NCBI GenBank assembly: GCA_051530055.1
Contig: CM121342.1
Span: 14,709,480-14,773,479 of the forward strand
Origin: Neoechinorhynchus agilis
Lineage: Eukaryota; Animalia; Acanthocephala
Length of the DNA: 64,000 nucleotides
Direction of reading: 5' to 3'
In this document: positions 10,249-63,100 of the stretch, in pieces
How positions within the stretch are numbered: the first letter of the stretch is position 1
How the letters are laid out: each line of letters begins with the position of its first letter
Notes under the pieces: model-generated
The model's input: the letters and a program-made list of their open reading frames with translations, nothing else
Database searches by the model: none
Told to the model about the DNA's origin: nothing
Made by a program: the position numbers and the translations under genes

Positions 10249-11656
10249 ATGATTCCGATCATGAATCCTGGTCGAAGTGAAGAAACCGACGAGGATCCGT
10301 GGTTTCTAATACCTCAATTGTTTTTACCGCAACTTCACAACTTACCGGCAGATGATGGCGATTGGCCGAGTGACCATTCAGATAAATCTTTAGAAACCAC
10401 ATCGTTGGTTGGCGATTGTGCCAATATTGAGAACGTAAACATTGAAATGAATGATGGAATCAGTGGTTTTGGTTTTTCGGAGCAAGTGGTTTTTAATCTA
10501 CTGCAAATGGGAATACGACGACCAACAGCTATTCAAACGCAGATTTGGAACGAGATTCGTACTGGATCACCGAAATCATTTCGCATTCTCGCTCAGGCTT
10601 GGAATGGTGCAGGGAAAACCCTTGCTTATTTGGTACCCATTTTCGGAATTCTCGAACGAGCTCAACAAAAATCCCAAGCATTATGCTTGGTTCCTACGGT
10701 TGAACTGGCTCATCAAATAGCTGATGTTGCGCAATGCGTAGGTAGGAATTTGATCGGTATTTCGATTTATGAGATGTCAGGCAAATGGCCTCCTAAGAAT
10801 CGCGGATCAAAGGAGATTCTGATTAGTACTTCCGGCCGGATTCAAGAAATAATGTCCAAAGAACTGATCGAATGGGACATGGTGAAATGTTTAGTTTTAA
10901 ATGACAAAAAACGGTCTCTTGTGAGAAAAGAGGTCGTTCTTTGTGAGAGATGAGGTCGACATGATGGTAACGATGCCAGGACATTATGAGATTTGTTTTA
11001 AAGTAATGGAAGCTTTACCTGATCAATGTTCCCTTCTATTTGTATCTGCTACGTTCACAGATTATGTGATTGAACGTGTAAAATGTCATGTCAAATATCC
11101 AGACGAATTAAAAGTGTTCGCACTAGACCGAAAAATGTCAATGAATCCTGAGACGACGCATTTGGAAATACCGTGTGCTTCTCGCGACGAAAAGTTGGAA
11201 ATATTGCGCTGCATCTTTGAACGAATTGTCGTTTCCAAATGCGTAATATTTTGCCGAACTCGTCAGTCGGCTCAATTTATTAAATGTGACTTTGAGCAAC
11301 AAGGTGTTAAAGATGTCGGAGTTTTAACTGGAAATAATTCGGTTATAGAGAGAATGGCGGCTTTAAACAAGTTCCGAGAATGTTTATGGAGAGTTCTTAT
11401 TACGACGAATATTTTGTCTAGAGGTATTAATCTAAGCGGCACCAATGTAGTGATCAATTACGATATTCCTACTCTCAATGAGCAGCCCGATCAGGTTGAT
11501 TACGACACATACTTGCATCGAGTTGGACGGGCTGCTCGAATCAACGGAACTGGACTTGTCATTAATCTCTCGGATCACGAAACAGGACTGACTGATCAAC
11601 TTCATGAATATTTTGGATTGAACATCGTCAAAACGAGTGTCTATGAACTTTGTTGA
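10249..11656 (+). CDS. DDX19/DBP5-like DEAD-box RNA helicase (divergent), split by a 49-nt hairpin insert
   Basis: Q motif PTAIQ, AWNGAGKT, PTVELAHQ, STSGRI, DEVD, SAT, IFCRTR, LITTNILSRGIN, VINYDIP...DYDTYLHRVGRAAR. The DYDTYLHR/VINYDIP context is typical of DDX19/25. ATG follows ttgtttcag. Confidence 0.75.
10900..10948 (+). other. Candidate non-canonical hairpin intron in the DDX19-like gene
   Basis: Removing 49 nt restores VKCLVL-DEVD. Arms 10904-10920 and 10928-10944 pair at 16 of 17 positions (2 G-U). Exact junction uncertain by 1-2 nt. Confidence 0.7.
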
Positions 11657-13170
11657 ACACGAATGCAATTATGCACGTTTGTAAACGATTGAACATCAAC
11701 GAATTTATATTAAATTTGTTTTCAATGACCTATTTCCAATTTGAGGATATTCGATGTTTAAAATGACAAAGCAGTTCTTTTTTAAATCGTGGTAAAGTGT
11801 ATTTTATAAGTTTTCAAAAAGAAATCATCGAGAGTAAATCCTTCGGATAATATTGAATTGGAGACGTGGTGATCAAAAATAATATTTGCATTTGCACCGT
11901 TGGCTAATCTAGTTTCATTTCGCGGCCTCTCCGAATCGACGAAAACGGTCTAGACGATTCTCGTATAAGTAAATCTCCACTACTGGGGCTCGATGCAAAA
12001 CGGCTTGAGTGAACATTCAACTATAACTCTATTTAGAGGGCCAATGTCACCTAGTTTTACACAAAATACACAAAGGAATCGTTATTGCGTTGGACTGGTT
12101 ACGATTGGAAACTGATTTTCTTTTTGCATAAAATTCAAAATTCAATCTCCATTCTTTTCAACTACAATCCTATATATTCGTTTCCATCGATCATAGAGAA
12201 CGTATTTTAGTAAATATTGAATTATAATTTAGTTTAAATACACTCTTGGTGCATGTTGGTGATTGGCTGGACTCTTGTTAATGATTATTTAGCTAATTAT
12301 TAATGTTTCAGCAGTAGTTTAATTTTAAAACGACGAAAAATGAAACACCAGTAGAATTATTTAAAACATATTAGAAATAACGCTGAACCGTCTCCATTGG
12401 TCTCGGCGAATTTGAAATAACACGATCCCCCAATATTTGAAACCATCAAGAAGTTCGCACAGCTTATGATAAATGGACGAAAGCAGTTTATATTTTTTTC
12501 CGAAAACAAATCCAGAGGAAGTTGTAAGACGGCGGAAGCTCGGAAATAAAGATTTGTCTTTATCTTTATCATTACAACATCCCGCTCAAATGTCCATTTA
12601 AAAACAAAACTCGATTAATGGAATACCTTAACACAAGACACGGATAATGTTTGTATACATTTGGAATATTTTAGAAGCTATTCATCAGCACTTAATTCTC
12701 CGAGGCACCTGCCGCTTTCATATGAGTTCGGCGAAACAAGAGTTCTCATCTCCTTTTCGTGCGAAATTTATTTCACCATTTTGATTGGGTTTAAGGATGC
12801 TTCTGATACCAGAAATACTGCGAGTTCAATCTTCAAACAATCTTTTTTGGATAAATCCTATTTAATGTCATTTATTAATATAGAAACGATTTAAGCTGAT
12901 TACAGTTTTGTTCACTGTGAAAGTGAACTTGATTTAGAGTAAAATATTTTTCAGAAATAGCAAAAGTTTCCAAAAATCCAATAAATCAACACGAACATTA
13001 TTTGGAGCACGCTGAGAATATGAGATCCGTCGAAGATTATATAAGGATCAGCAATAAATCACACTAGCCAATCAGATTTCGAGCAGCATTCCTTCATTTG
13101 CTATGTGATCATATAGCCTCCATAACTTGCAATACACGTATAACACACAGTTACTCACTTGCTAGAAAAA

Positions 13171-14714: not shown

Positions 14715-15440
14715 TTACGCTGGAAACATTTTCTCAAAATGGCCAGCAAGTAAAGATATGGCAGCAGCATTTTCTCTTCCTTTTGGAATTACTACTTCAG
14801 CAAACCGTTTGGTTGGACGACAGAAGTTATCATGGCACGGTTTAACGTGATCATCGTGCTCATCTAATATTTGATCAAGACTTCTTTGCTCCTTATACTT
14901 CAAAACTCTTCTTGCTAACCAATATTTTCACAACCGAGTATTTGTGAGAACAATGGTAATTAATCGAATATCGGCATCACAGTCGACGAAAATCTTCAAA
15001 TCTAAGAGTTCTCGCAGTATAGGAAAGTACAGCACATACGTTCCCTCGATAATAATGATGTCAGCTTTATCGTTGATTGCTTGTTTTTGTGGCCGAATTG
15101 GACTTCCTTTAATCTCGACAACATCATTCGCTCGTGATTTGAGACGCTTTATGGTATCGCAAAGTTTGACGCAGTCGATGTATTCTGGATAGAATTGCAA
15201 ATAGTTTGAACCGTAACTGGAGTAATCAGGGACGACTTGGGTACTTTCGTTAAAGAACGATTCCATGTGGATCGTTACAATGCAAGGCTTAGCGCCATTC
15301 ATCACTCGATTTTTCAATTCGTCCACAATCTCCCGGACAACAGTAGACTTACCGGCTGCAGATCCACCTGCAACTCCTATGACGTAGGCAGACCTGAGTT
15401 TTGTATGACGAGGACGCGATGAGGCGCGTTCATTCTTCAT
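14715..15440 (-). CDS. Uridine-cytidine kinase-like protein, split by a 45-nt hairpin insert
   Basis: VIGVAGGSAAGKST, IIIEGTYVLY, RELLDLKIFVDCDADIRL + ARRVLK...RSLDQIL...VKP...RPTKRFAEVVIPKG match the UCK family. Confidence 0.8.
14916..14960 (-). other. Candidate non-canonical hairpin intron in the UCK-like gene
   Basis: In-frame 45 nt containing TGA, bounded by TTA...TTA. The 16-nt arms pair at 14 of 16 positions. Removal restores DADIRLARRVL. Confidence 0.72.
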
Positions 15441-15523
15441 TATGGGTGACTCTGAAAAGAAAAGGACTCAGAAATACCCAAATAAAAGATTTTCGAAGGC
15501 TCGAACTCGAGTGATTTATAGAT

Positions 15524-15973: not shown

Positions 15974-18900
15974 AATTATTCATTGTTTTTAATATGGCGA
16001 AAAAAATTGAATTTATTAGGTCGATACTTTTCTAGTAGGTTCGCGATGGAAAAAAGCTACATGGACCTAATAAATTCCTACCTTTTGCCATATCAAAAAA
16101 GCTTTTAGGATTGTTCTTATCGTCTTTATGCTACGGAAGAAGACTTTGGAAAGTGGAGAAAAATATGGATAATATGATTTTGAGTATTTTATTGCAAAAA
16201 AGGGCTTCGTATGGCGCATTTGAGATTGTGGAAAAATTTTATGTATTACGATTTTTCGAGGGCGATCTCATAAAATTCATTAGTTCGTGTACGATCACTT
16301 AGATTTAAACTCGAAATTTCAGCACTAAATTTAAATTATTAGTATATCGAAGGATAAATAAATTTTTTAATAAATATATTGATCGAGACGCTGTGTACTT
16401 TACGTTTAGTTTAAACCACTGATAATTTAAAGCTAAAAACTATAACGAAAGTAAGTTTGGTGTTATTTAGGTCGCTTGTCAACATCCGAGGGAGATCGGA
16501 TTGAAGACGAATACATTTCGACTGACTGATTCAGTCATTCTCAATTCAATCAGTCAAAATATATTCGTCTTTAATGCGATCAAGCGAATAATGCAATCCT
16601 ACACGCAACCGTCTTTTTGCGATGATAAACTCCATAAAATAGACAAATATCGTTACGTTCAACTATTTTCTAAATCAAATTATGGTCCGAAGAAAATCCA
16701 TTGCTCAAAACTACGAAAAAACAATCACAATTAACATCTTGACTAAGATCCAATAAATACGCTCATTTTATTTTAATCAAGAAATCGAGCCATAGAATTT
16801 AATTAGCTAAATTAATGGGTGTATAGCAACTATTATTTTGCTTTCGAGTTAAAGATGCGATAATTTTGAATGAGAAGTATTCGCGGGTAAAAATAAATTA
16901 TCGATATAAAATCCTTCGAGATAATCCAATTAGAATTGTGGTGAGCACTAAGCAACAAATTAACCTGCGAATTCTAGAAAAGAATAAATTCATCATTGAA
17001 TTTAAAAGCTTGATTTAATAATCATTCATTCGAATCCGTTTCGATGGGAAATGCAAATTTATTAAATTGTCCGACGTAGTTTCAGCATATAAATAAGCAA
17101 TTGTTAATCACGTCTGTTTCACGGAAAAAGAAAACAATCTGAATGTATGAACTCCGATTCTTTAGAATTAATTAATATAATCTACATATTCCATACGCAT
17201 GTCCCCCCCGTTGAAATTTCAGAATTGCGCATTTTGAGCTCGTAACCGGTTAAAAAATCGCATTATTCGGTATCGTTTAGTTCACAATTTTTTTTGTTTA
17301 TCAACGCTTTTTCGACATTATAAAAAATATGTTTTTTTCAAGGAAACTAGAAGTGAGCATAAAGAGCGAGGACATTTATTTGTATTTAATGATTTGCGCA
17401 ACAATACTTATTCTTGACAAGTTTCATTAAAGCAATATGATCGCAGAGTTCGCTTTAGAATATTGAACTAGATAAAATGCTCTACATTTGATTTTATAAT
17501 ATACAAAAATCAATTGATAAAACAGTGCTATATTCTCGTGTTTCAGTCAAACTTCCCCTAGTTCTCGAATCACGATCGATTTGTTATTAATGGCAACAAT
17601 TATTTCTAGTAGCACTTAAAAAAATCGTTTTTGTACTATAACGCATGTGGAATCTCATTCGTAGGTTGCACTAAAGAACGCAATACGTTATCTAATGCAT
17701 AAAAACCTGCAAAACAGACTAAATACACTTTTGTTTCTATTCCACCAGTAAATTTCTAAATAACCTATTTAAATCTCTCTTATTTATAAGCGGTTAAACG
17801 GATTAAATGATGCAACCCACAAAAAAACTACAATATTTTTTGTATAATCTAACTAATATTCCCCTGAAGTCGCTATAGATGGTAGAACCTGATAGATTTT
17901 AATGGCTACTTTAATGGGTGTTTATAAAGGAAAATATGAAAAACAGTCACAAAGATTGCTATACTTCGTATTTTCCACTTGAATACATATTTATTCGAAT
18001 AACATTGCGCACCAGTAGCCTTAAATTCGGTCTATCGTTTTGTAATACTTCTATTTGATGAAAAGACACAAATAAGCATCGTGTTACAAAAATGTAACAA
18101 TTTACTCAATTAATATGAGTTGATGGCTAAAAATGTGGTAATGCCCGTAGAATACAATTTATTTTTAAGAAGTTGATGTGGGTCTATGAGACAAACGGAT
18201 GTCAAAAGTTCCTTTGATAAGTCCAAAACACACAAGTAACTAGGAGTTTAGACTATGAATGATTTTTTAGTGTGCATTTCGCGTATCTATTCCTTGTCAT
18301 AAGCATCGCCGATTGGCTCTAACAAGATTTTGGAAAGGAAAGTCAAAAACCAATCTATCTGCGATTTCATTTTTAAAGAAAAATTCTAATATGAATGCCG
18401 GCACCCACATCGTTCCGTTTTGAATGTCTAGCAAGTTTGAATTGCCGGCTCGGATTGTAAGGATGTTAATGAGAATGACGTTACCGAGGCCACGTTTCTC
18501 CTAGCCACATGATACCGCTTCTGTGGAGGAATTGATTTTAATTCCTTAATTATTAGTCTTAATCTTCATCCTGCTTTCGGGTTATTATTAGATATGAAGG
18601 ATCTGACGGTTTAAAGGGGCAGTAGTGAAATTCATTTTAGCATATTTGATTTCTAGTATTGATTAAATTCAATGATCGGTATTTATAGCATATCGGTGGG
18701 CGAATCTAATGATGATCGATCGCTCATTTCTTAACAGTCACTTTGAAATGGCGATTAATGCAAAAGGGGTCCAAAAAGACTAGGATCGTCGTCGGTTATC
18801 CATCTGCTTACTGTTCCGTTGATTCAAAAGTGAATTTCTCGCACTCGATTGCTGTAGCGACCATAAGTCGAGACTACTCTTCGAGCAACCACGAGGACAT

Positions 18901-21806: not shown

Positions 21807-24800
21807 TTGTCCTTTAAAAAGTACGAACGGATCATGGTAAGAAAATGAAAAGTAAAAATATTCCTGTTTTGCAATCATTTTTACAATATAAAAATTTGCA
21901 GGATCTTCTATTTTTGCGTGTGCGCGTGTGTTTTATTGATGGCAACACACACGCAGTATAAAACGATGAGCACATCGCCAAGAAATATCTATTGCTCGAT
22001 TGCCTTTCGGGAGATAAAATCAAAGACTTACTTTTATCGGCTTGCCGGATATGTATTCCTCTCGTGCACACGAGTTGTCTTTCTTGTTGTCAAATAGTAT
22101 CACTTGATTTAATATCGATAATGGAACGATACGCTCGATCTGGCTCAAGTTAGCAGCAACAAGCGAGCAATAGCACTATCTTCTTGAAGAAAGTGGAGGT
22201 GTGTGTTAAGGGAAAGGAAAGAAGTGTGTGTGTTAATTCGTCTTATCGATCCTCCGTGTGTGCTAGCTTTGATATATCTCGAGAATTCGTAGCTTAAAGG
22301 GCGCACTTGTCAGCTATATGCTCGCTCTGAGACTGATTGCTCCAAAGGGTAAATCCTCAGCCAATAAGAATTCGCATATCTTAATTGCCGTACGCGTTCT
22401 TAAAAGGACCGTACGCGATACGCCAACCATCCTAAGGAATGTTTGAAGAGCAAAGATGGCGATAGTACCCACAAAAATATGCATACATCAAGATACGACG
22501 GCAGACATTGCGCCGACTTGGTGACAGGGTCTTCAACAGGGCTGTAGAGTGGCACAAATTCTCGGACACGCTAAAGAAATTTCTTAAAAGAACGATTAGA
22601 TACGATAAAAAAATGCTAAAACTTTCTTCATCCCAAGTGGCATTTATTTTAAGCATGGATAAAACCTATTAAATATTTGCATTCCATAGATACGACACGA
22701 GCTGTGTTTGCATTTCTCTAAGATACGCAAGGCAATTGTTTAATCTCGTATTGCTGTGTATGTTCCGTCGATGGAAAGCATCCGCAATGACAGCTGACGT
22801 GACTGAGCGGAGAACTAAATTTGTAAATGTGTGGTTGCGTTTCAATCCCAGTTAAAAATATCGATCTAAATGAGGCTTGTCTTTAAATTCGTTGCAACTT
22901 GCATTATCCTTCAAAAATGAATGCTGTTCTCGAAAATGATATGAATTTTTGTACTTTTTGTAAGTTTACCATGAAGAATATTTATTAAATGTTTTATTGA
23001 AACCAAGTTGCGTGTTTTGACAAAACCGAAGAGCTTTCAATACAATATTTAATTTTTCCAAGTCTCCTAATAATGCATATTAAATAAAATATTGTTTAGA
23101 ACTGATTTTTGAGTTTAAGCGCAATCTATGATTTTTCAAATAAAATTATAACACCGCGCTCGTAAAACTTCTTGCTTCAAAAATATCCATATTTAAAACC
23201 AGTTTGAAAAGAGTCAATTCGGAACAGCATCTTCGAATACTTAAACTATAGTAAACATTTGTTATGCAGTTTCATGGACTGCTCTTCATGCAGGCTACTA
23301 ATGCATTCGCTAAAACAAGTCGTAATAGCATAACGATGAACAAAAATTTAAATTGAATTTTTTAGACAATATTTATACAACAACTACATGAAATTTTATG
23401 TAGTTTCCGCTTTATACCACTTAATTGAATTTTAACTAACTACTGTAATCGGACCCAAAGATCATCCATAATGTCCAGTTTCTTGCATCTTAAGTCGGCA
23501 AACATCAATGTGATCGTTAAAACGTAGCTACACAAATTAGCTAGTATTTGATACAATAATTACGATTTCTTTTAAATATATTAACACGCTTGCATTCCCT
23601 TGATTTTTCAATTGGCCGCCAAAACTGATAAGGTTCGTTGATGTTTTGAAGCTTTCGAGTGGTTCAAATAATATCAACTTCAGATTCGGCAACACTTTCT
23701 TTAAAAAAAAGGTAACGATAATAGATACAGCGTGGTGGTTATGAGAGCCTTTGATTTTTAGGAAGTGAAAAATCTCTCATTTTTAACCTGCATTCGTTAC
23801 GTATGGCTTATTCAGGATTTTAGATTACCGACGATTTCAAAAGCATGAATTCCTACGAGGTGAAATTTCTAGCACGTCCTCAACTGCCTATCTTGACATG
23901 TGGCTTTGATCATGAGTAGTGCATCAATAAATATGTTAAAAATAGTTTGAGCAGTTCAACAGCTCTTGTTGGTCACATGGGGTTTGTATTCTCTTACTAC
24001 TTTTAAAAGCAACTCTAAACATCAATCTTTAAAACCATGATAAGAAGTGAAGCCTTTGATTAATAAATCGTTATCAGGCCAAAGTTCGCTTTCAAAGTCT
24101 AAAAATCCATTTTGCAATTTTTTTCCACTTAAATATCCATTTGATTATCTCTGATTTTTTTATTCAAAAAAACTAAACTATTCGAGCTTGGGAATGTTAA
24201 ATTAAAGTACTTATTCTGTTTAAACTATTAAGACTATGAAATTTCTGCGTTTTTGAGTGATATTTAACTTGTTAAAATGATCGACCTGTCAGATAACGAC
24301 CATAATGATTTATAGCTGTGAAGCTATGCTGCTGTCTTAACGAACATTATGTGGCTCCTTTTGTGCAATTAAGCAGTGAATATATTGCAATTAAATCGTG
24401 CATTGGGAATTAAAAACTCATATTAGTTAGGATTGGGGATAAATAATAAAAATGCCCAGAAAATATGCAAGAAATATTTTTAGTTGTTGGAAGAAACAAT
24501 TGATAGAGATACAAAAATCATCTACTTGCAATAACCTTTTACAATATCGATAATTTTATTTTCTTTGTATTTTGTTAAGCAATAAGATCGATAGAAGTTT
24601 TAATTATCAACCTTATCACAACAATTGTATGTTATTTTTTTCTCATTTAATTCTCTTAAAACATGCTTATTCAACGATTAAATGTTGCCGTACACATAAA
24701 CACGAGGTTTCCGTTAGCGACAAACAAAAATTATTTTACAACTCACCGTTTTATTTTAGCGTCTAGAAATTTTCACTCAAATGAAATAAAACATTGTTGA

Positions 24801-50200: not shown

Positions 50201-50581
50201 AGTAAAGATTTGAATCCGTCGGGGTGGCGAAACTAAGAGAAAAAAGTATCTTTTCCCGCGAAGATATTAATTAAAGATATAATTTATTCGTGGAACTTTA
50301 ACGGTGTATTCCGAAAGAGAGATCGAAGAAACTTGCGAAACAAAGGCAAACCTTGGCGTAAAATATCGAAATTATCCGACCGGTGTGAAATATGGCATCC
50401 TGAAGAGGGTTTTAAAACTAATAAAAAAAGAAAGTATTTTCCCTTTCCCAAATACAATAATGCAAGTAATCATTTTATAGTTTTTAAAGTTAAAGTCACT
50501 AGAATTGGACACACCTATATGTTTGGCGCAACGATATGATTAGATTGCTTCTTTTTTTCTTTGTTTTTCTAGACAAATATC

Positions 50582-51826
50582 ATGAATATTGACGCGTTCG
50601 CAGACCACCCATCCACGGTTTCTGCCAAGTTTTCTAGTCCGATACCAGACGGATCTGATGGTTCTAAGGAAATCTTAAGTAATTTCGAAAAGACATATCA
50701 AAAGTTTGAGGACATGGGTCTTCAGGATCCTTTGCTTCGTGGAATATTTGCTCACGGTTTCGAGCATCCGAGTGCCATTCAGCAGCGTGCCATTGTGCCC
50801 ATCATCGAAGGCCACGATGTCATAGCTCAGGCACAGTCTGGAACGGGAAAGACCGCTACTTATGCCGTCGCTGCCATTCAACGCCTGGACTGCCGCAATA
50901 GTGACTGCCAAGTACTTATCCTTGCTCCCACTCGTGAGTTGGCTCGCCAGATTCAAAAGGTTGTCGTGGCTCTGGGCAACTACATGAAGGTGAAATGCCA
51001 CGCTTGTACCGGTGGTACCAGTATTGATCTAGATATGACAACTCTTAGAAATGGTGTCCATATTGTGGTCGGTACGCCCGGTCGTGTTTTAGACATGATA
51101 AGACGTCAAGCGTTTCGCACTAGTTCGATCATGATGTTCATTTTGGATGAAGCAGATGAAATGTTAAGTAAAGGATTCACCGATCAAATCTATGATGTCT
51201 TTAAAAATCTCGGAGAAGATACACAAGTTGTGTTGATGAGTGCGACGATGCCAGATGCCGTTCTTGAAGTAACTGATCGATTTATGCGAGATCCAGTTAC
51301 GATATTAGTTAAGAAGGAAGAGCTTACTCTTGAGGGTATTAAACAATTTTACGTTGATGTCCAACAAGACGCTAACAAACTTATGACTTTATGCGATCTG
51401 TACGCTAGTCTTCAGGTCACTCAATCAGTGATCTTTTGTAATACTCGCAAGGTCGTCGAATGGCTGCAGCGTGAAATGGAAGAGCGCCAGCATCCAGTTG
51501 CTGCCATTCATGGCGATATGCATCAAGATGAACGAAACCGAATTATGCAGGGATTTCTGGAAGGTCAAAGTCGTGTTTTGCTTACTACCGATCTTTTATC
51601 ACGTGGAATCGACGTCCAACAAGTCTCTTTGGTCATAAATTTCGATCTTCCTAAAGATCGTGAAAGCTATATTCATCGAATTGGTCGAGGAGGACGATTT
51701 GGTCGAAAGGGAGTCGCTATAAACTTTGTCACGAACGAGGATAAAGAGTATCTGAAAGGAATCGAAGAGTTCTATGGTACTTCCATCGAAGAAATGCCAA
51801 TGAACGTTCACGAATTGCTCGTATGA
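50582..51826 (+). CDS. EIF4A: Eukaryotic initiation factor 4A (DEAD-box), intronless CDS, 414 aa
   Basis: [60 protein letters not shown]4A3 is not excluded, but the sequence is closer to eIF4A1/2. Confidence 0.9.
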
Positions 51827-52045
51827 GGTGGCTTCGTGGTCTAAGGAGCATGACCGGAGTCTAGCACGAAACAGAAAAAAAGAGTTGAGCTCCATTTAAC
51901 AGAGTGCCTGTGTGTAGTAGTAGAAGGCTTTGGGATCAATGCATATCGATATTTCATTTCGAATGATTTTTATGAATTCCTGTTGATCTCTTTCTCAACA
52001 TGATATCGCTAAATTTCTACATTTTAAATTGGAAACAAAATTAGT

Positions 52046-52734
52046 TTATTTTGGAATGAGATAAAAATTACGCGAAAGTTCGTCACTCAAGTACTCGGAC
52101 GTTTCGGCTATTTTCTCTGTTGGAAACTCAGGTAAGTCCATTAGCCATTTAACAAAGTCTTCTCTCAACAATCCTTTAGTAACGTTCTCAAAAATACTAT
52201 ATTTGTGCACAGGCTTTCTCAAGTCAACTGGTCGTTGATTTTCGATTGGACTCCTATTCTTTGGCTTATTGGATTTTAATTGGACATTCCTTGGAGACGT
52301 ATGAAAAACCTTTAGATCTGCGAATGAAGGAATTGTGTCCAGAGTCGACCGATGCCCTTCTTCATATTCATCGTACGCACTTTGAGGACTTGTTATACTG
52401 TACGTATAAAGATAATCTTGTTCGCTTTTAGATTTAGTGCATAATTTCAGAACCAAAACCAATTGTGAGATTATGCGTTCTTGAACTCGAATCCTCCGCT
52501 GTTCGTGTCTTACGTTTGTCGCTACAAGTTGATTCTTGATTTACTTTTTTAGGCTCCTTCAAACGCACGACCGTGACTGGATTACTGTCTTCTTCGAGCT
52601 CGGAAAATTCTTCACCACACATTGTATTCAATCGCATAAATGCGTTCTTATTGCCTTGTCGAATTCGCATAGAAGGACGGTTGAAAGATCGTTTAGGCGG
52701 TTTATTCGGAATTGCTTTTGGTAGCCTCGTAACT
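52046..52734 (-). CDS. Unknown protein; two ORFs joined across a 40-nt hairpin; probably extends further 5' (towards ~53010)
   Basis: ttttag|GAG CAA CCA... reads through 52434-52670 and shifts +1 into 52046-52462 exactly at an 11-bp stem. No family recognised. Confidence 0.5.
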
Positions 52735-53196
52735 CGTAGTCCTTTTGGTTGCTCCTAAAAGTTTTTTAAGGTTAATTAAACCTGGGAATATAGAAACGAT
52801 CTGGTACATAAAGAAAATATATTGTTTTTGAAAAGGGATTTGAAATGGTAATAGCCTGTACCTTTAACATTTTGTGGAAGTGCGTCGTTTCTTTACATTC
52901 ATACTAATGATACATCGTCGTCATGGTTACGATGATCGAGTCCAAAAAATAATCGATACCTTTGTCGTTTTTTTGATTTGTTTATCGTGCGCGCACGCAC
53001 GCTCACATGTAAATCTACAAGAAAGCACAATCATAATCTTCGTTCATGTTAAATATGGACTTGACAACCTGACCTAAAATCTGAACTTTTTTTTCAACTA
53101 TGAGTCTGTTCGTTTGCTCACTATCTCCACCAAAAGGTCTATGATTAAGCGCACTCTTAAATTGCGCAAGACAACGCTGTGGGTTTAAAGTTTAAC

Positions 53197-54004
53197 ATGA
53201 GCGGCACAGAACTGGTTGTGTGTTCAATTTTATTTTCTTGGGCCACAGTTCTTCGATGTCAGCCAATTTCTGAAGTTATCGTTGAAAACAGTGAAGTAGC
53301 GACTTTACAAATGAAAATTGTTTGTTATTTCCATAAGGCAATCGGTCTTAATAAGAAAAATGAAGACCGATTGATTTGATGGAATCAAGGACATTATTTG
53401 CAATGTACATTTGCCGCCTGCGATAGCCAACACAACCGATAATCTAGGAATGATCGTCTACGTCCAGAATGTCAAAACTTATGACTATGCCACTAAGGTA
53501 ACCGTTCAATATTCTCAAAGTTTTCACCTAAAGCATCTGTTTAACGGCGATTATGAACGTGTTGCAGTTCAGAATCTTGACCGATACTCAATATGCGTAG
53601 TCCTTTTAGAAAAATCAGTGAATAAAAACGCAGACCTTGGAAACGAGGACGTGGTTAAATCCTTTTTATGCACAATTGTTAATCTTGATCCGGAAATCGG
53701 TGTGTCTATAGACGTCAAACCAGAGTTTTCTCTGTTTATTTATTTACTCTGCTTGCTGTTTATTAGTCCTATAGTTCTGCGATATTATCTTCAGTCTCGA
53801 AAAACGACAAAAATGAAAGACGAATTATCGAAGAAGAGACACACAAAAGAGAATATTGATGAGAAACGAGAACTGAGTCTTGAAGAAATTAACGATGAAT
53901 TCGATGAGGATCAAACAGATGAACTTAAAGATAATATCGATGTCGTTGTCGATAGCATTTTAAAAGAAGCTCCATGGCATATTGACACGCGGAAATTCAT
54001 CTAA
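53197..54004 (+). CDS. Type I membrane protein, family member 1
   Basis: Signal peptide (MSGTELVVCSILFSWATVLRC), Cys-containing ectodomain, TM FSLFIYLLCLLFISPIVL, and C-terminal VVVDSILKEAPW shared with paralogs. One 40-nt hairpin interruption. Confidence 0.7.
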
Positions 54005-54312
54005 ATACACAAATGAAACGATAAATTGTAGTGTATGATTATTTAATAATATGTAATAAGCGCATTGTAGGATGGTTTTTCGTGTAGAAAAATTAAAATA
54101 GGTTAAGTTTGTAGTTGACGTGCTTTTTGAACAAAATTCAGAAAAGTAAAATTCTCAAAAGAAAACATTTGTAATTATTTTGTTTAAAATAGCGACTAAA
54201 CAGTCTAGATGTGGAAAACAGCTTTGAGGTAAGCAAGTTTCTTGTTTTCATCTACACATTCGGTATTTTTGGCACACACACAATGCTATTCTCAATAAAA
54301 GCACCCATCACG

Positions 54313-55173
54313 ATGCTGAATTACTTTTGGATATTATTAAAGCTTATATTTGTTAGCCATTCAGTACCACTTTCAAGGATAAATGAAACCGAAGTCATTG
54401 CAGCTGATAACGCCACTTCGATCATCAAAGTAGAAAATGCAACCTCAAGAGCGAAATTGGACTGCTTTTTCCATACACTTAATTGGTTTCTTTTTCTTGC
54501 CTTGAGAGAAGCTGATTGATTTAATGGAATTGAGGATATTTTGTGCAACGTGCAATTGCCGTCTACCACCTCTAACTCCACAGAGAATATGGCAATGGTT
54601 GTTTATTCGCAGAACTTGGATACCGAAGACTTTTTAACAAAGGTAATCACGGAGTATTCATCGGTGTTTCAGTTTAGTTCACTATTTGGGGAACATGAAT
54701 ATTTTACGTTCCAAAACTTCGATAAGTATCGAATATGTTTAATCCTTTTAGCGACTTCGCCTAATGACACCGTTGATCTCAGAAGCGAGAAAGCGATAAT
54801 GTCTATTACGTGTACCGATATTAATCTGGAACAAAGCGTTGAAGTGCTAATGGAAACAAAGCCAGAATTCTCTTTATTTATCTATCTACTTTGCTTGCTA
54901 ATTGTCGTCTTACTTATACTAAGAGATCGTTTAAAGTCTCGAAATTCGGATAGGAAAAGCTCGAGAAATTTTCAATTTGAAAGAGAGCGTCTACCGGTTA
55001 TAAGAGAATCGGGCGTAAATACAAAGGAGATCGGCGCTCAGAGACCAAAAATGACTGATTATGACGAATATATCGATCATGTTGTCGCAAATATCTTAAA
55101 TGAAGTGCCATGGTACACAAGTCGCGGTGAATGCTCTCCAGTTAAAGACATATTACAGAAACATTTACTTTAA
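54313..55173 (+). CDS. Type I membrane protein, family member 2
   Basis: Signal peptide MLNYFWILLKLIFVSHS, KPEFSLFIYLLCLL TM, and DHVVANILNEVPW. A 45-nt hairpin with in-frame TGA sits at the same position as in member 1. Confidence 0.7.
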
Positions 55174-55226
55174 CGTTAACATTCTTGGTCTTAATGAGAT
55201 TTATCGGTTTAGTTTAATAAAAAAAT

Positions 55227-57108
55227 TCATGATTCTGGTTGCTGCTGTAGTTGTCGACCGTTGCCGCCACAGCAGCAACATTTTATTCGCTGATATTTCA
55301 GTGAACATTGCTTGTGACAAAGAGTTGAACAATCTTTAAAAAGATTCAGGTTAGAGCGTTGATGGATAAAGAAAGCTTACAAATGCAAGTAATGACGTCT
55401 TCCTCAAATGGAAAGATCAAAGTTTCCTGCTTGCACATTGAACATTGCATGCCGGCTGATGAGCAACTGGAGCACGAAAGGACGTGTTTTGTGAATATTT
55501 TAATGATCGAATCGATTATTATCTGATGTTTTCCTGATTTAACCTACGACGAACATGAGATTTTCGAGAGCTAACGGCAGCTATACCTGGAACAGATCAA
55601 ACAATGAATAAAGATGCGACTGGTTGTAGACGTGTGAGCCAGAAAGAGAATCAAGAACACTTGTAAGTCTAATGCGAAGAAATTATAAAGGAATGTAAAT
55701 CAAATTTGCCTATGAGCGATTGCTATTTTTTAAATAGACGCTGAACAGCTCTAAAAATAATTTTATTGTAATTTTTAATTAGATGTTTAGAACATCCCTT
55801 GACTTTTTCCTTTACGCATACAGTTAACTGATGTATTGCATCAGGGAAGCCAATAAAATTAACACCCTGAACCCTCCGGATCCTCAGATACCTCCCGGGG
55901 AGACGTAAAGGAAAAAGCCGAGTAAAGGATGATCTAAACACCTCATTAAAAAATAACCGGCTTGCTAGAAGACACATAAATCGATTAAAAAATTATCAGA
56001 TTTTAGAGGCAATGATTTTCAATCTTGGGGTCAAGACCCACACTTTTAAAAGTATATTCAATATTTAGGGAATAATTAAAGCAACGAAACAATGTGTCCA
56101 TGGAAAAAGATATTGTATACAATATTTCTTTTATCGCCTCTGTTTTGTAAGTTGAACTTGAACCGCCAAAATAATTGCACTAAGAACAGGAATGACATTT
56201 TTCTAAAAAGTATATTTTGGGTTTCAAACTTGGAGTCGTGACCACAAAACAAAAGGTCGAAAACTGTTATTTTAGAGGCAGTACCAAAATGGGGCAAAAA
56301 GGTGATCGCTCAAATAACCACTAGACAATCATACTGTTCATTTGAAGCATTTTTACAAGATCCAATGAGCCGTTTTAGAATTCGAAGACGTTGTCGCAAT
56401 TCCTTCACAAGGCGAATCTCGCTTACTGTCTTCTCTAACTCTGGATTCACCATATCCAAATCAATGAAAGGTTGGTTTAGGTTTTTGTCAAGAACCGACA
56501 CAGCTCGTCGACTCAATTGATATTTGTGTCCAAAATCCCAATTAGAAATGATTTTCTCCGGTAAGTAGTGTCTAACGTCGTGCATGCAAGCCGGACAGAA
56601 TTGCTTTCCGAAATATTCGCAAATCTGCCAGTTACGACGATTCATTGAGATAGCCCCACAACCGGCACATCGTTCATTGTGGACAATGGAAGGACGTGTT
56701 AGAATGAGTTGAGGTCTTGGAGGAGCCCAATCCTCGATACCACGTATAAAATGCTCTCCTAACTTAGAATCGCGTTCATACACTTCGATCTCATAAACTG
56801 TATCCGGAAATTGAGATCAAAGATTAATCATGACACTTGAGCTCATTGACCGGTGGTAAATCGTTTTCGTAAGTTAAGCTGTTAAGTAGCGAAATCGCAG
56901 TATTCGTAGCACTGCTGCTAGAGGGCGAAGGTTCATTCCTTTTCGCCATGGAACGCTCAATACGCATCGTAGAATTGGTCAGTTCAAAGGCTTCAATGAG
57001 CATATCGCAATAATCAATATGGGCTTTTTCATTCGCCGACGAAGGGCACGTTGAAAGGTCGCGATCCAGGATAAAATCCCGAATCCGTTTTAATGGAGGA
57101 TCCGGCAT
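55227..57108 (-). CDS. Rubicon-family protein (Rubicon homology / zf-RING_9 domain)
   Basis: NEKAHIDYCDMLIEAFE, EDWAPPRPQLIL, CAGCG...CEYFGKQFCPACM, PEKIISNWDF, HLYSLFDL, HVLSCSSC...CSMC...LIFPF...CI|YCSTLCHKQC. Includes a 666-nt canonical intron (55669-56334). RUBCN vs RUBCNL unresolved. Confidence 0.8.
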
Positions 57109-57739
57109 CTGCAATAAACAAACACGATATTTTAGAATTCACAATTTTACAGAAATAACCTTAAACGACCGACTTCCATAAATAGGGCATTAATCTAACC
57201 GATTTTTTTGGCCGATTTCGCTTATTCAGCCATTACTAACTTTGTTGATATTGACCAAATCGTATTTTATCATTTTAAGCATGGTTAGCCGGTAACTTTG
57301 TTCTGTTTTAAAATGTCGCCCTTACCACGGCTGTAAATTTTATTCGTATTTGTGACGAATTCAATATGGAGAATGACGCAATTTCGTCGGAAGAATCCAT
57401 GTTTCTGTGGCGAACTTTTAGTAATGTTTTTATTGATTTTTCTTATGCGTAGGTCATTGATTTAAAATGAAATCGTTTCTTGTTTATATTTACTAAAAGT
57501 CACAGAATTTTATTTAGCAGTCATATCAAATCCGCATTACCCATATGTTATGATTGTTCGGCAGCTTCCTTGATGGCAATGGCATTGCCGCGTTGGATCG
57601 CCCCGTTGATTCGCTGCGACATTGTATTGTATGCAACGTTACTTTCCTACGTTGCACCATAGGTATAAGCTTGTCAAATAGAATTAGACTCCGCAAGAGA
57701 TCTAAAATACACGACAGCAGTCCTGTTATGCGGGCAATT

Positions 57740-59800
57740 CGCGTCTCTTAAAATCAGGTCATCGTATGTACGACAGTTCCCTTTGCCCTTAAGATACAAT
57801 GTCGTTGGCTTCCAGAAAAGGAACTGTTCACGACCTGTGGGCAAGATGCCTCGGACCGAATTATATTGCCCGTGAACTGCAGTCGTCTGCGGCGCAAATA
57901 TTCACTGGGCGGTTGGACTCCGGCTCTCTTATACAGTGCTTTGTTGGTCACTTTATCTTACCATCTTACCATCTGACCTTGAACGCCGCACGTAAGAGAG
58001 ATGAATGATTTTGGTCCAACTGCCTCGTCGCCGTTGGTGACAGTGTCCAGGTCTCTGCATTGTAGTAGAGAATGCTCTCAATTAGAGCCCTAAACAGCTT
58101 CGAACGGAGTTCGTCTGGCAAAGACACTGTCAAACAGTGGTTTAAGTTGCCCCATTGCTCTCCAAGCTATAGCTCTCCTTCGGCTGACATCCGCACTCAC
58201 CTCAGGAACGACAGCTCCCAGATAGACATACCGCTCTATCTGTTTTAATTGCTCAACGCCATTCGGCCCTTAGCCAGAGACTGTATGCACGACATGCGGA
58301 ATCGTCAAGAATTCCGTCTTTTTCGAGTTGATGGTCATACCAATCATACTCGCCCTCTCGCACGGTCTATTTAGCATGCGTTGCGCTCCTTCGACTGTTG
58401 AGGACATCAATACGATGTCGTCGGCATATGCCATGTAGGAGGCGCGTATCTCAGGATACCTGCGACCTCTTTTCCTCAACAAAAGAAATCCATCTTCATC
58501 ATTCGGTAGTGCCTATATCATTACCCAATCAAGCACCAAGATGAAGAGGAAAGGAGCCAATGTGTCGCCCTGCAGAATACCTGAAGTGGTGGAAAAGTAT
58601 TCTGTCAAACCGTCAGTTGTCTTTACGGCGGAAATTGTGTTTTTATATAATGCTATAACGGATGTGACAATGATTGGCTGCACTCCATACTCCTTTAAGA
58701 TACCGCCAATCATCGTTCGATTTACCGAATCGAAAGCTCGACGGAAATCAACAAATACCAGCGTCACACCCGTTTGATGAATTCGTGCCTCCTCGAAGAT
58801 CCTCCTCAAAGCCAATATGTGCTCTGTGGTGCATCGACCTTTCCTGAAGCCGTTCTGTTCAATTCTTAGAAACGGTTCGAGGATTTGCTGAATTCGGTGT
58901 CTCAAAATGCTGCTGAAAAGTTTTCCTGTCGAGCAGCATTTCTTGGGGATCATTGATAAATGCGCCGTTTGCCGGATTTGAGGTACTGAGCCACCATTCA
59001 TTATCGGTATGATTTTTCTGGCAATGGATTCAAATTTCAGTACCTCTGCCATTTTCGCATCTGGGCCTGATGCACCATTTTCGCCGCAGCGATCGCTTCC
59101 TTCACGGAAATCGGTCCAGTGAAGTATGCCTCAGTGCTTGGGACGATTGTGCCTTTTGGAAGTGCGGGACTCCCTTCCAAAGACGATAATGGCGAATTGA
59201 GAATTTCCGCAAAATAATTTGCGAATCTCTTTTTCTGATTTCCGGGGAGAGACCTTCAATCAAAGTTGGCTGTCTTTGGGATCTTCCTGTGAGAGTGTTT
59301 ATCGCTCCCCATGCTAAGGAGGTACGAACGAAACCTTCCTTATATGCGATCCCGCGAACTGCATCCTCTATCGAAGCCTTTTGCTTTTCATTATAGAGGT
59401 TGGCAAGTTCAAGACTTGTAATGCGAGCCTCAGATCGTTTTCCTCTTTTTATAAGAGTTTTGATCTACTCAGCCATTGCCATAAATTCACAGTCCTCCTG
59501 CTATATAACCTTTGCAGCTTTTATACGCCTCATTTTTGGAGCAGCTCCGGCGGCCAGACAGCTACTGATAGTAGCCTGTCAACGCGGAGTCGATGTGCCG
59601 CTCCACTTGGTGATGCGGCAGTGAACAGGAGCAACAAAATCCACCAGTGCAACGGGAAAAAGCGAGGGCGTCGTAGCTCTCGCCGACGACTTGAGCGTCG
59701 AAATGAGCGAAACTGTCGCCGGAGGCAACGAAAGCGCCAGTTGAAGCTCATCGCCGTGGTGGGTACGGACTGTTCAGGTGGCGCTGACAGCCGTGAGCCC
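57740..59800 (-). mobile_element. Decayed RTE-like non-LTR retrotransposon (RT domain, 5'-truncated)
   Basis: QNGFRKGRCTTEHILALRRIFEE, FVDFRRAFDSVNR, GILQGDTLAPFLFIL, YADDIVL, YLRRRRLQFTGNIIR. Frameshifted. Confidence 0.85.
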
Positions 59801-59809
59801 TTTGGCCCA

Positions 59810-60830
59810 GCTATTTCAGATAGAAGAGCATTACGAATCTGCTGCGCTGCGAGGGGAAGCTGCTGGAGCGCATATCGCCGGTGGCATATTTCAGCATCTT
59901 TCCCAGTCGGGAAATGAATCAATCGGCTTCTTTTGCGAGGCATCCCAGTGTTTCCACCGCAATCGGAATGAATATATATTGATGCCCATCGAACGGGGAG
60001 TACTTATGCCGATTCTTTTCCTCGCTGAAGCTGGCGACTGCTCGCGCTTTCGAGGTGGCGTCCCGTAAGTGGGATGCTGCGAGCGTGTTGGACAAGTAAA
60101 ATCTCAAACCAATATTTTCCCGGAGCACCATGGAAGGAGAGTTGCGCCATCAGGGCGTTTACCGTCGTTCCGGGAAAGTCCGACTGGTTCGAGTCGAGCG
60201 GGAAAACCGGTCGTTGAGAGGGCTTCCTTAATTATGCGGTTGACTGCTGAGTGCTGTGCGTGGCGAGCATTTGAACGCTTGCAGTCAAGGCCGTGAGTTC
60301 CCAACCTGTTCACCGTCTCACGGCACCGACATGTATATGAGCCTGAGAAATCTATGTCCAACCGAAATCCCACAGCGACGGTGATGGCTTGGTCATCCAG
60401 CCTCCTGCCAACAGCCGTGACCGGGAAAGCCTTCAAGAAGTCGCTGGAGTGTGGAGCTGAGACTGCCAGGAGACGAGCTCTATCGGTGGGAGACGAGCGT
60501 GAGTTGCGAAGCTGCTGATAATACGCAGTGTGGAGCAAGGTAGTCCAACGTTTTTGGGAGCTTGTTTCCGTTGGAACGACCTGCCCGAACACTGACGTCC
60601 ATTGAGCGTGCGCTTCGATCTGTTCAGGTGGTGCAGGTCTGAAGAGACCGAAATCGATGACGAAAAGGCAGGAATTGCTACTTCAGTGGCACTCTAGATG
60701 CCAAGACCGCCGAATCGAATGGGAAGGATCGCCTGTTTCCATTCTGTGTCGAACAGTCGTAGGTTTAGGACTTCTGACAGGGTTGATCGAACGCAGTCGT
60801 CGAAAAGAATTTATGGACACGAAAGTCCGC
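59810..60830 (-). mobile_element. 3' half of a CRE-clade retrotransposon (RLE endonuclease)
   Basis: LPIRFGGLGI, RARLLAVSAPHSSDFLKAFP, CRCRETVNRLGTHGLDC, RHAQHSAVN, LEPVGLSRNDGKRPDG, FIPIAVETLG. Confidence 0.85.
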
Positions 60831-60954
60831 TTTTTCGCGTCTGATTGACCATTTTTCATTGTAGTGTTGGGAGTGCAGTTTGTGTGTTCATGTGGTTCAC
60901 TTAATTCACTCGAAATGGAATTCGATGATGTATTGAAGAGTATCGTTATTTTAG

Positions 60955-63100
60955 ATGAGTTCGATTCTGGATAAGATTGATTCTATTGAACAGGAGGTAC
61001 AGCCTAATTTTTATTTTACACAACTCTTTTGTAACTGCCGAAATATAAGATTGCTCGTACGCAAAAGAACAAAGCTACTGAGCGCCACTTGGGTCTTCTT
61101 AAAGCTCAATTGGCAAAGCTAAAGAGGGAACTGATTGAACCGAAAGGAGGTGGCGGTAAAGGCGAAGGATTTGACGTTGCCAGCGCCGGCGATGCTCGAG
61201 TTGGATTTGTAGGTATGGCTATTGTTTGTTCATGTTTATGGCGTAAATTATTTCCCAAAAAGAACTTTTATTTTTTAGTTTTGATACAATCACCACCGTC
61301 CGCAAAATTGGAGCTTCTCTCCTTCCTCGGCTGTCGCTATCACTCCAGCAGCATTGCCTTGTTGTACTGCGAGCGAGATATTTTGTCGCAGGAATACACC
61401 TGCTCGTGCGTCGCCGGTCGTTTCTCTCAATTTCTTCGAGCGATCCTGGAGCAGAGTGAGTGCCGACTCCGAAGGCGACAAAATAGAGGGCCCTTGCTAA
61501 TTCTCTATATTTTAGTACCTTCCTCCCTTCCGCTGCACTGGTTGCACCTCCAGCGATTTCGAGAGAGTAGGGAATGTTGCTTACTTCGAGGGTGTCCACA
61601 CGCGTGGCGTCCCAGAAAAGGCATTTGCCCTCCCGCCACGGCAGCCGAGGAAGGAGAGAAGCTAAGATTTTGCGGACGGTGGTGATTGTATCAGAATTAA
61701 CAAATAAACGTTCTTTGTGGCGTAAAAATTAAAAGAATTTATCTATTCTAATATTTTGGAGACATTTAATTTTTACGCCATAATCAAACATGAACAATTC
61801 TATCTTCAAACAAACATTTTTATTTTGGTTGTTGAACGCATATTGATTTCCCGTAGGTTTCCCATCGGTTGGAAAGTCTACGATTCTGACAAATCTTTCT
61901 GGAGTATACTCTGAAGTGGCTGCATACGAATTCACAACGCTCACGACCATTCCAGGAATGATCCGTTACAAAGGAGCCAAAATTCAGTTGCTTGATTTGC
62001 CTGGTATTATAGAAGGAGCTAAGGACGGAAAAGGACGTGGACGTCAAGTTATTGGAGGTGAGTGGAGATTTAGAGTATTTCTTACAGTTTTTGTCTCGAT
62101 TTGAACAGTTGCAAGAACATGTAGTCTTATATTCCTAGTCCTTGATGTCATGAAACCACTAACGCATAAACGAATTATTGAAAAGGAACTGGAAGGATAC
62201 GGAATTCGGTTAAATAAACAACCACCGAATATATTCTTTAAAAAGAAAGAGAAAGGCGGTGTTAACTTCCAGAGTATGGTATTTTTGTTCTCTTTGGCGG
62301 ATTAACTTGTTTATTATTATTGTCTAGGATACCAATTGTACTTTGGACGTGGAAACCGTTAAAAGTGTCCTAGCTGAGTACAAAATTCACAACGCTGATG
62401 TTTTTGTGAAATGTAATGCAGAAATCGATGACCTCATTGATGTAGCTAAGAATTCTCGTTGATTTTTGCGCGATCTGTCCCACTTTCGCATTAAATATAG
62501 TTATAGTGCTTTTTTAAGTCCGAGCCTCCCAAATGAGAATTGTAAAGCGTAATCGAGGGTAACCGACGATATATCCCTGCTATTTACGTGCTTAATAAAA
62601 TCGACCAGATTTCAATAGAGGTTTGCTATAGAAATTTAATTTCTATTTACTTTATCGAAGCAGGAATTGGACATTATATCTAAAATCCCACATTGTGTCC
62701 CGATATCGGCGCACAATAAATGGAATTTCGACGACCTTCTTGAACTGATGTGGAAAGATTTAAATCTCGTCAGAGTGTAAAGCTTAAACTTTGTCTATCA
62801 TTTCCAAAATTGCATTTCCTTTAGGTACACTAAACCAAAAGGTCAATTGCCCGATTACGGCAATCCCGTGGTTTTAAAAGCGGACGCATGCACGGTTGAG
62901 CACTTTTGCAACAAAATCCATCGACAAATGATTAAACAATTCAAATCGTAAGTGGTTCCTCGAGCTGCTGTGATACATTCGAATCGATTTGTTTATTTAG
63001 AGCACTCGTGTGGGGGAATTCTGCTAAGTTTAATCCTCAAAGTGTGGGAAAGGATCACGTTCTTATGGACGAAGATGTAGTTCAAGTTATTAAAAAATGA
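60955..63100 (+). CDS. DRG1: Developmentally regulated GTP-binding protein 1
   Basis: [14 protein letters not shown]|[18 protein letters not shown]..., [54 protein letters not shown]. Seven canonical introns plus one 107-nt hairpin insert. Confidence 0.95.
61282..61693. mobile_element. Two CRE 3' ends in inverted orientation inside DRG1 intron 2
   Basis: 61282-61336 and 61639-61693 are ~55-bp inverted copies of each other. Confidence 0.8.
62445..62551 (+). other. Candidate non-canonical hairpin/TIR intron in DRG1
   Basis: GAT GTA [gctaagaattctc...gagaattgtaaagc GTA] ATC GAG GGT AAC. Removal restores DDLIDVIEGNR. Confidence 0.72.

Follow-up and report, generated by a model that had tools for sequence, protein, structure and literature searches.

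In the larvacean Fritillaria borealis, non-canonical introns derived from miniature inverted-repeat transposable elements (MITEs) form repeated families with predominantly AG-AC or AG-AT ends (Henriet et al., 2019, as presented in PMC11282704). Also, the nonconventional introns of euglenids carry the signature 5'-N3CDG ... CHGN5-6|R-3' (PMC12501133; PMC11282704), and the introners of Amoebophrya and other dinoflagellates combine non-canonical junctions with variable direct repeats of 3-5 nt and inverted repeats, in multi-copy families with strain-specific terminal inverted repeat (TIR) motifs (PMC7789003; PMC11282704). Here we analyze a window of 64,000 nucleotides of chromosome CM121342.1 (assembly GCA_051530055.1), whose deposited proteins identify the source as the eoacanthocephalan Neoechinorhynchus agilis (Acanthocephala), an animal, as had been supposed in a first reading of the DNA made from its letters (hereafter, the original prediction). 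Nine inserts of 38-53 nt, one of 107 nt and one of 426 nt break the reading frames of a DDX19-like helicase, a uridine-cytidine kinase (UCK), RB1CC1, DRG1, a family of membrane proteins and an orphan gene. The inserts are best explained as lineage-specific insertions into formerly continuous exons that now behave as a second class of introns. At least for DRG1, UCK, RB1CC1 and the membrane paralog MemB, a non-canonical, hairpin-assisted excision from RNA at non-GT-AG boundaries is a proposal that we find evenly balanced between true and false. We found no report in the literature of unusual introns in Acanthocephala or Rotifera.

The inserts share with the Fritillaria introns an animal host, a species-specific insertion into exons, ends with inverted repeats able to pair, junctions with target-site-like direct repeats in some cases and a place alongside GT-AG introns at conserved positions; they differ from them in that GT-AG introns dominate here, no terminal dinucleotide recurs and the inserts are single-copy in about 110 kb. 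With the euglenid introns they have in common non-GT-AG borders (proposed ones here), the lack of a polypyrimidine tract, base-paired ends, borders made ambiguous by direct repeats and the company of conventional introns. However, the host is a bilaterian, and nearly the whole insert is one hairpin where euglenids show a short terminal pairing. As in the Amoebophrya introners, the proposed junctions are non-canonical and three elements have 3-nt repeats (TTA, GTA and GTA); in contrast to them, no family structure is shown here, one 8-mer being present in three inserts (p ~0.07).

Inserts in conserved reading frames

Positions are window coordinates, and the interruptions were located from maps of open reading frames (ORFs) and homolog alignments. 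In the DDX19/DBP5-like gene, 49 nt (10900-10948, plus strand) lie between VKCLVL and DEVD of the DEAD box, and their exact excision restores a gap-free DEAD-box alignment. The UCK insert of 45 nt (14916-14960, minus strand) separates DADIRL from ARRVL and has a TTA direct repeat at both junctions; the alignment with human UCK2 shows a gap exactly there, and excision closes it. Three interruptions are found in the RB1CC1/FIP200-like gene, all on the minus strand: RB48 (48 nt, 25575-25622), spanned entirely by a 16-bp stem with 4 G.U pairs; RB-426 (426 nt, 26205-26630), made of 423 nt and a single copy of the direct repeat GTA, whose exact junction is without a homology anchor; and RB53 (53 nt, 27317-27369), between LQLK and GWMTALANLDD, which once excised leaves a gap-free alignment to human FIP200 (LQLK-GWMTALANL vs LQHQ-GWAAIMANL). 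In DRG1, 107 nt (62445-62551, plus strand) stand between DDLIDV and IEGNRRYIP, with a GTA direct repeat at both junctions. The membrane paralogs A, B and C (MemA, MemB and MemC) have inserts of 40, 45 and 38 nt at the same site. That of MemA (53338-53377, plus strand) forms a perfect 11-bp stem; the homologous insert of MemB (54478-54522, plus strand) forms a 16-bp stem with 6 G.U pairs; and that of MemC (minus strand) is cut by the end of the window, which holds its 3' end (63988-64000), the full 38 nt being at 10172-10209 of L004.

The homology-defined boundaries of DDX19, UCK, RB53, RB48, MemA, MemB and DRG1 were examined in all equivalent registers and none is GT-AG. That each insert holds a stop or frameshift while the flanking ORFs are intact, as originally claimed, was borne out by the ORF maps and homolog alignments. 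The about ten hairpin interruptions in many genes listed at that time were recovered, each at its place, in the DDX19-like, UCK, RB1CC1 (three), membrane-paralog and DRG1 genes, while a Rubicon-like case turned out to be canonical and the orphan case ambiguous. The orphan hairpin (40 nt, 52438-52477, minus strand) does sit at a frame change. However, it is avoided if an ordinary GT-AG intron of 46 nt, located upstream and using another frame, is spliced; a 52-nt GC-AG alternative also exists, and its antisense fold is stronger than the sense one, opposite to what we describe below for MemB and RB48. It has no homology anchor, an attempt to rebuild the deposited model of this gene from its length alone gave 438 solutions, and we regard it as a doubtful member of the set.

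In Pomphorhynchus laevis, the DRG1 exon is uninterrupted at the insert site and 6 of the 7 canonical intron positions of N. agilis are common to both species, which indicates that the insert is a lineage-specific insertion into a formerly continuous exon. Such an insertion explains by itself a gap-free alignment after exact excision, as obtained with P. laevis DRG1, and is silent on where the RNA is cut today. The structure-based removal or skipping that was originally proposed is partly supported, as far as a distinct class in genes under selection, with sense-strand stems in at least two cases, is concerned, and is not located to an RNA cut by exact excisions that restore homology.

Folding of the inserts

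Five of the seven short inserts tested (DDX19, UCK, RB48, MemA and MemB) fold with z-scores of -3.3 to -6.0 against 200 dinucleotide shuffles, at most one of which was as good. The values are -3.85 for DDX19 (-15.4 kcal/mol), -3.33 for UCK, -4.86 for RB48 (-1.2 in antisense), -5.98 for MemA, with a stem of -14.8 kcal/mol, and -3.70 for MemB, whose antisense is without structure. The 12 ordinary GT-AG introns of 43-56 nt in the same genes lie between +1.25 and -1.6, and their last three bases are TAG, CAG or AAG. In agreement with the original prediction, the neighbouring introns are ordinary GT-AG introns, which prove unstructured, and the inserts form a structurally distinct class compared with GT-AG introns of matched length in the window. 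In 44 kb of unique sequence, ORF-interrupting inserts account for 5 of the 10 strongest local hairpins; a scan of the window by raw minimum free energy (MFE) carried no information, GC-rich regions dominating it. The long stems with G.U pairs that had been described are there, at 11-17 bp with G.U pairs common, and the distance from their base to the break in the conserved reading frame is 0-3 nt on the 5' side and 0-8 nt on the 3' side. But the description does not extend to every case: RB53 folds weakly in sense (-14.0, z -1.67; -3.8 in antisense), and DRG1 (z -1.5) and RB-426 (z -1.18) are not significant overall. In these three only the ends pair, by a near-terminal 10-bp inverted repeat in DRG1 (AATTCTCGTT / AAATGAGAATT) and a near-terminal inverted repeat in RB-426 (TCGAAGGTCGT / ACGACCTTGGA).

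The comparison of paralogs suggests a constraint on the RNA stem, which is seen for one gene family. The membrane-family insert is older than the divergence of the three paralogs (~35% identity), all frames being open, and a conserved C-x-F-H motif runs right up to the hairpin in MemA, MemB and MemC. When the three are aligned, 11 of 11 pairs are kept, the 4 one-sided changes are all to G.U and 2 changes are compensatory, while slid controls of the same alignment pair at only 15-55%. In this family the stem thus appears to be maintained at the RNA level. In addition, MemB and RB48 fold on the sense strand only, with the antisense at chance level, and their stems show structure-preserving changes only; all stems together count 19 G.U pairs against 3 A.C mismatches. 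On CM121341.1, a paralog of the DDX19-like gene (L003) carries the same insert with 3 differences, all at unpaired positions. The two copies differ at 45 coding sites (dS 0.072, dN/dS 0.33) and both ORFs are intact.

Pairing may also reach into the exons of the membrane family, whose flanking ends are complementary, TTCCAT / ATGGAA, in MemA, MemB and MemC (53328-53333/53379-53384 in MemA; 54468-54473/54524-54529 in MemB). This exon-exon pairing lengthens the stem beyond the two junctions (p 0.01 for MemA and 0.07 for MemB in a control with in-silico insertions). Taken over all inserts, pairing beyond the stem was significant for MemA only (combined p 0.011), and we consider it a lead only.

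The preference for the sense RNA strand in MemB and RB48 bears on programmed DNA elimination, in which the inserts would be limited to the germline and excised from somatic DNA. Such a process would suit DNA that was extracted from entire worms, germline included, and short inserts with precise bounds, three of which have direct repeats ending in TA. A strand-specific RNA structure would not, nor does the presence of the same MemA insert in a redundant contig, no insert-free version having been seen. TA...TA ends of the kind that bound internal eliminated sequences in ciliates are present in UCK, DRG1 and RB-426 only, and the inserts as a set are not consistently bounded by TA. To our knowledge, chromatin diminution is not known in Acanthocephala, and we judge this explanation very unlikely.

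Sense-strand hairpins of 40-53 nt are also what translational bypassing could use, the hairpin being kept in the mRNA while ribosomes hop over it. The likeness to the bypasses of T4 gene 60 and the mitochondrial byps elements of Magnusiomyces lies in these gap sizes and in two inserts with matched take-off and landing codons, UCK (TTA...TTA) and DRG1 (GTA...GTA), no intron being annotated at the latter. However, the codons do not match in DDX19, RB53, RB48 and MemB, the gaps of 107 and 426 nt far exceed known bypasses, and the host system is nuclear-cytosolic and animal. We know of no precedent for bypassing by cytosolic ribosomes of animals, which makes this alternative highly improbable.

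Canonical splice sites near the inserts

The main rival explanation is that the ordinary spliceosome splices at nearby cryptic GT-AG or GC-AG sites, giving a slightly altered protein. An insertion would then have survived where usable canonical sites chanced to surround it, and the hairpin would be a relic of the insertion or an auxiliary element. Several observations weigh against our interpretation, many of them in favor of this one. We searched for in-frame, stop-free GT/GC-AG pairs, and found them near nearly every insert. For DDX19 and MemA/C, whose inserts are shown to be old, their length is that of normal introns (GT-AG of 49 nt; GC-AG of 52 and 50 nt), and it is this alternative 49-nt GT-AG intron that the deposited models use in the two DDX19-like paralogs (P0001 in the window). 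A deposited protein from the redundant contig, P0244, is exactly the 52-nt GC-AG solution of MemA (53338-53389), of which the hairpin would be the 5' part, and in MemC a GTGAGT donor, which precedes the hairpin insert by 27 nt and the shared AG acceptor by 39 nt, would define a 77-nt intron. Four inserts start with GC at 0 or +/-1 and have an in-frame AG 6-14 nt downstream. The Rubicon-like insert of ~52 nt, originally taken for a non-GT-AG hairpin, is a canonical 52-nt GT-AG intron (gtcatg...atcgaag; 56783-56834, minus strand) whose 3' 40 nt form an 11-bp hairpin ending at the AG, so that here the hairpin sits inside a canonical intron. Ordinary introns are all GT-AG, and the spliceosome looks conventional here; the proposed junctions have no common terminal dinucleotide or motif. 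The comparison with known systems also counts against our interpretation: the AG-AC and AG-AT termini of Fritillaria are found in no insert at its homology-defined boundary, DRG1 alone being readable as AG...GT in one register, and at +4 to +6 the inserts have GAC, ACC, ATT, TTT, ATC, AAT and AAG, none of which is the CDG of euglenids. Moreover, the excess of G.U pairs could stem partly from a transcription-associated mutation bias, and a count based on MFE favours G.U too. Finally, a protein-collection search with the hairpin-removed DDX19-like, membrane-protein and DRG1 sequences, together with exact look-ups of 7 alternative products, returned only proteins of the N. agilis genome annotation and no transcripts from Logan, which holds assemblies of public sequencing runs.

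Pairs of this kind are expected by chance, at dozens per site, and their existence is therefore uninformative either way. The question becomes their quality. GC-AG readings with an open frame are available for MemA/C (52 and 50 nt), DRG1 (113 nt), the orphan (52 nt) and RB48 (63 nt), and they resemble U2-type GC-AG introns in which the hairpin would open with the donor and be followed by the AG after 6-14 nt. They depart from that type in that the donor would be buried inside a stable, conserved stem, that MemB has CT at the homologous position, and that the acceptors of DRG1, RB48 and MemB are GAG. A G at -3 occurs in 0 of the 14 canonical introns of the window (13 folded plus the 644-nt intron 2 of DRG1). 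DDX19, UCK and RB53 have no GC donor at the start of the insert. The claim of 40- and 45-nt membrane inserts in the original prediction is correct as to their presence, with the reservation that a GC-AG reading is open to MemA (52 nt) and MemC (50 nt). Yet a conserved stem of -14.8 kcal/mol that sequesters the putative GC donor of MemA is, as modelled, hard to reconcile with plain U1-dependent splicing.

In MemB neither GT nor GC is found at the end of the conserved CFFH exon. GC donors are at -39, -27 and +21, that is, distant or internal only, and the in-frame GT/GC-AG solutions are GC-AG introns of 84 and 96 nt that delete CFFH, or one of 36 nt inside the insert, all with a TGAG acceptor. 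In UCK, all GT/GC-AG solutions of normal length remove the conserved DADxRLxRRVL region, the catalytic-lid motif, and the remaining option is the 24-nt intron of the deposited protein (KAL7673312.1, 233 aa; 14715-15440, minus strand), which by exact look-up skips just 24 nt inside the insert. For DRG1, 115 of 120 homologs have the motif [LIF][IV]D.[IV]EGNR at one fixed length and with the same Glu; LIDVIEGNR is restored by exact removal of the 107 nt only, while the GT-AG and GC-AG alternatives (116 and 113 nt), which share a CGAG acceptor, delete V-I-E or I-E. Canonical alternatives are thus apparently poor or damaging for DRG1, UCK and MemB, judging from the conserved protein sequences.

The annotation offers an indirect test. 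It was made with BRAKER 2.1.5 guided by mRNA-seq, with more than 1 billion RNA-seq reads as hints, and BRAKER drops the hints of non-canonical junctions. The deposited DRG1 protein (KAL7673321.1, 236 aa; 60955-62462, plus strand) ends, by exact look-up, at a TGA inside the insert, and the last third of the gene, four exons (62552-63100) with three canonical introns, is unannotated. Given the RNA-seq hints, a GT-AG or GC-AG junction in use in DRG1 should have appeared in the model, and its absence counts against the canonical rival for this gene; the truncated model would be indirect evidence against canonical splicing there. The deposited models go wrong exactly at the insert sites, with DRG1 truncated, UCK given a 24-nt 'intron' and MemA modelled two ways, the chromosomal copy, which is identical to that of the contig, having a different GT-AG intron. 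The models of the near-identical chromosome and contig copies differ in length (207 vs 251 aa; 220 vs 163 aa). Weighing both sides over all inserts, we regard splicing at cryptic canonical sites as possible but rather doubtful.

Integrity of the genes and of the assembly

Inserts might also simply stay, either because this strongly reduced parasite is losing the genes that they disable or because it tolerates the truncated proteins. A published analysis treats the missing genes as real losses and the apparent loss of conserved genes in acanthocephalans is very high, which agrees with such a fate, as do the truncated or odd deposited models of DRG1 and UCK. A further point on that side, and against ours, is that the age of the inserts is established for DDX19 and the membrane family and not for UCK, DRG1 or RB1CC1. 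On the other hand, at least 7 genes are hit in 64 kb and all their flanking ORFs and canonical splice sites are intact, and the DDX19 and membrane-family inserts are old in genes under purifying selection. No other annotated DRG1 was found in N. agilis by the protein-collection search, and the changes in the RB48 and MemB stems preserve structure. Host genes under selection imply that the inserts must be neutralised somehow. From these patterns, pseudogenes or artefacts are unlikely for the DDX19-like, membrane-family and DRG1 cases, and we consider disablement as a general explanation quite unlikely.

Illumina and ONT R9.4 reads were combined with MaSuRCA into a hybrid assembly, a setting in which assembly or polishing artefacts may be suspected. 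However, the MaSuRCA consensus is built from Illumina k-mers, and the same inserts, with few differences, recur in tandem paralogs as well as in paralogs located on other chromosomes, so that an artefact is extremely improbable. An unplaced contig, JBMGUZ010000020.1 (8020-17892 of L007), duplicates the window at 48601-58473, with just 2 mismatches over 9873 nt (99.98% identity). The duplicate is redundancy of the assembly, and an allelic comparison of the contig and the chromosome gave no polymorphism information at such identity.

Origin of the inserts

Three elements, UCK (TTA), DRG1 (GTA) and RB-426 (GTA), combine 3-nt direct repeats with inverted ends, an arrangement of the MITE type for which copies were searched in about 110 kb only, and they look like small DNA-transposon derivatives. 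Besides paralogs, no second copy of any insert was found within the ~110 kb examined, in line with the statement in the original prediction that the inserts differ in primary sequence. An origin by local duplication or snap-back of the flanks was considered and rejected, no insert being significantly similar to its joined flanks in either orientation. The 8-mer TCTCACAA (complement TTGTGAGA) has 4 occurrences in 64 kb (10919-10926, 10941-10948, 14942-14949 and 52463-52470), all inside the DDX19, UCK and orphan inserts, and a 10-mer, TTCTCACAAA, is common to the DDX19 and UCK inserts. A common sequence family was nonetheless rejected, as the test of 8-mer sharing was weak (p ~0.07) and a looser TCTY/RAGA stem descriptor was at chance (18 hits vs 14.2 expected).

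Strong hairpins or palindromes also occur outside coding sequence, at 16500-16575, 24579-24619 and 12251-12308 of the window (stems of 29, 15 and 20 pairs), and a near-perfect palindrome of 26-27 bp is found at 6705-6767 of L003. Hairpin-forming insertions are thus not confined to exons. Most inserts measure 38-53 nt and overlap the lower range of ordinary introns (43-56 nt), and these lengths fit a size filter for spliceability.

A possible mechanism

In the excision that we propose, the sense-strand RNA stem would bring the two exon ends together, and the insert would be cut from the pre-mRNA at or beside the stem base, mostly at non-GT-AG boundaries. The machinery would most likely be a spliceosome that tolerates odd 5' ends when the ends pair, as in Fritillaria. 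Alternatively, a spliceosome-independent cut-and-join may operate, as suspected for the nonconventional introns of euglenids, which leave as full-length circular RNA once the conventional introns are gone; its strong form, a bilaterian, structure-guided system that excises short hairpins from nuclear mRNAs at the stem base whatever their terminal sequence, is in our opinion improbable. Other known routes were compared as well. The inserts lack the GT-AG ends of mirtrons and have no Rfam match at the gathering threshold. Folds with 20-nt flanks contain no bulge-helix-bulge motif of the tRNA-endonuclease type (two 3-nt bulges separated by a 4-bp helix), since the junctions fall where a long, uninterrupted stem has its base or in symmetric 3x3/4x4 internal loops (DRG1 and MemB). 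The twin 7-nt CNGNNGN loops of IRE1-type substrates (XBP1/HAC1) are absent too: each insert has a single, internal loop and the junctions are not in 7-nt loops.

Other features of the window

The homology between the DDX19-like paralogs (10236-11670 vs 2988-4420 of L003) ends ~13 nt beyond the coding sequence (CDS) on both sides despite a dS of ~0.07, which suggests that gene conversion acted on the coding region only or that the duplication arose in an unusual way. A retrocopy, which would have been evidence on the mature mRNA, was discarded: an acceptor-like TTTCAG precedes the ATG in the two copies alike, and there is no poly(A) tail. Acceptor-like TTTCAG/TTTTAG motifs at or a few bases upstream of start codons are seen in the DDX19-like copies (10236-10248 and 2988-3000 of L003), in UCK (15453-15459) and in DRG1 (60948-60954), and may point to spliced-leader trans-splicing or to introns in the 5' untranslated region. 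Intron 2 of DRG1 (61213-61856, 644 nt, GT-AG) contains a foldback element, especially at 61268-61700, with inverted ends of ~30 nt (gttttgatacaatcaccaccgtccgcaaaat ... attttgcggacggtggtgattgtatc). An intact gene with RWD and DFRP_C domains, encoding a DRG-family regulatory protein, lies at 7373-8386 (minus strand), 53 kb from the interrupted DRG1; its intact state is consistent with a DRG system that may be in use.

Between the RB1CC1-like gene and UBL5, a satellite array occupies 20 kb (28559-48572) with a 186-bp unit in ~107 copies of 91-94% identity and a higher-order period of 372 bp. A GC-richer block at 57500-60700 (minus strand) contains frame-broken reverse-transcriptase fragments (RVT_1, 58273-59130) of a degraded non-LTR (long terminal repeat) retroelement, present also at 5500-9000, and ORF fragments with 'PAVAKGLLFRV' are repeated around 8.2-8.7 kb.

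Implications

If the junctions are non-canonical, N. agilis would extend insertion-derived introns defined by the pairing of their ends to what is, as far as is known, a second lineage of animals besides Fritillaria and the first within Spiralia. This class would sit beside a conventional GT-AG set, and its recognition would be testable in a metazoan with existing deep RNA-seq, the public RNA data of the species being available under BioProject PRJNA1223661 (74 libraries) and as a Trinity assembly (Zenodo 10.5281/zenodo.17199078). If the junctions are canonical, the finding would be reduced to a frequent recent gain of introns from hairpin insertions. Should a cut-and-join system be at work, palindromic insertions into exons would be nearly neutral, and the 'gene loss' of acanthocephalans would be inflated in annotations restricted to GT-AG introns. 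The public annotation truncates or distorts DRG1, UCK and the membrane family, and probably many other genes at such sites. Indeed, the metazoan BUSCO completeness of the N. agilis genome is 47%, and part of this low value and of the gene 'loss' of the species may be an annotation artefact.

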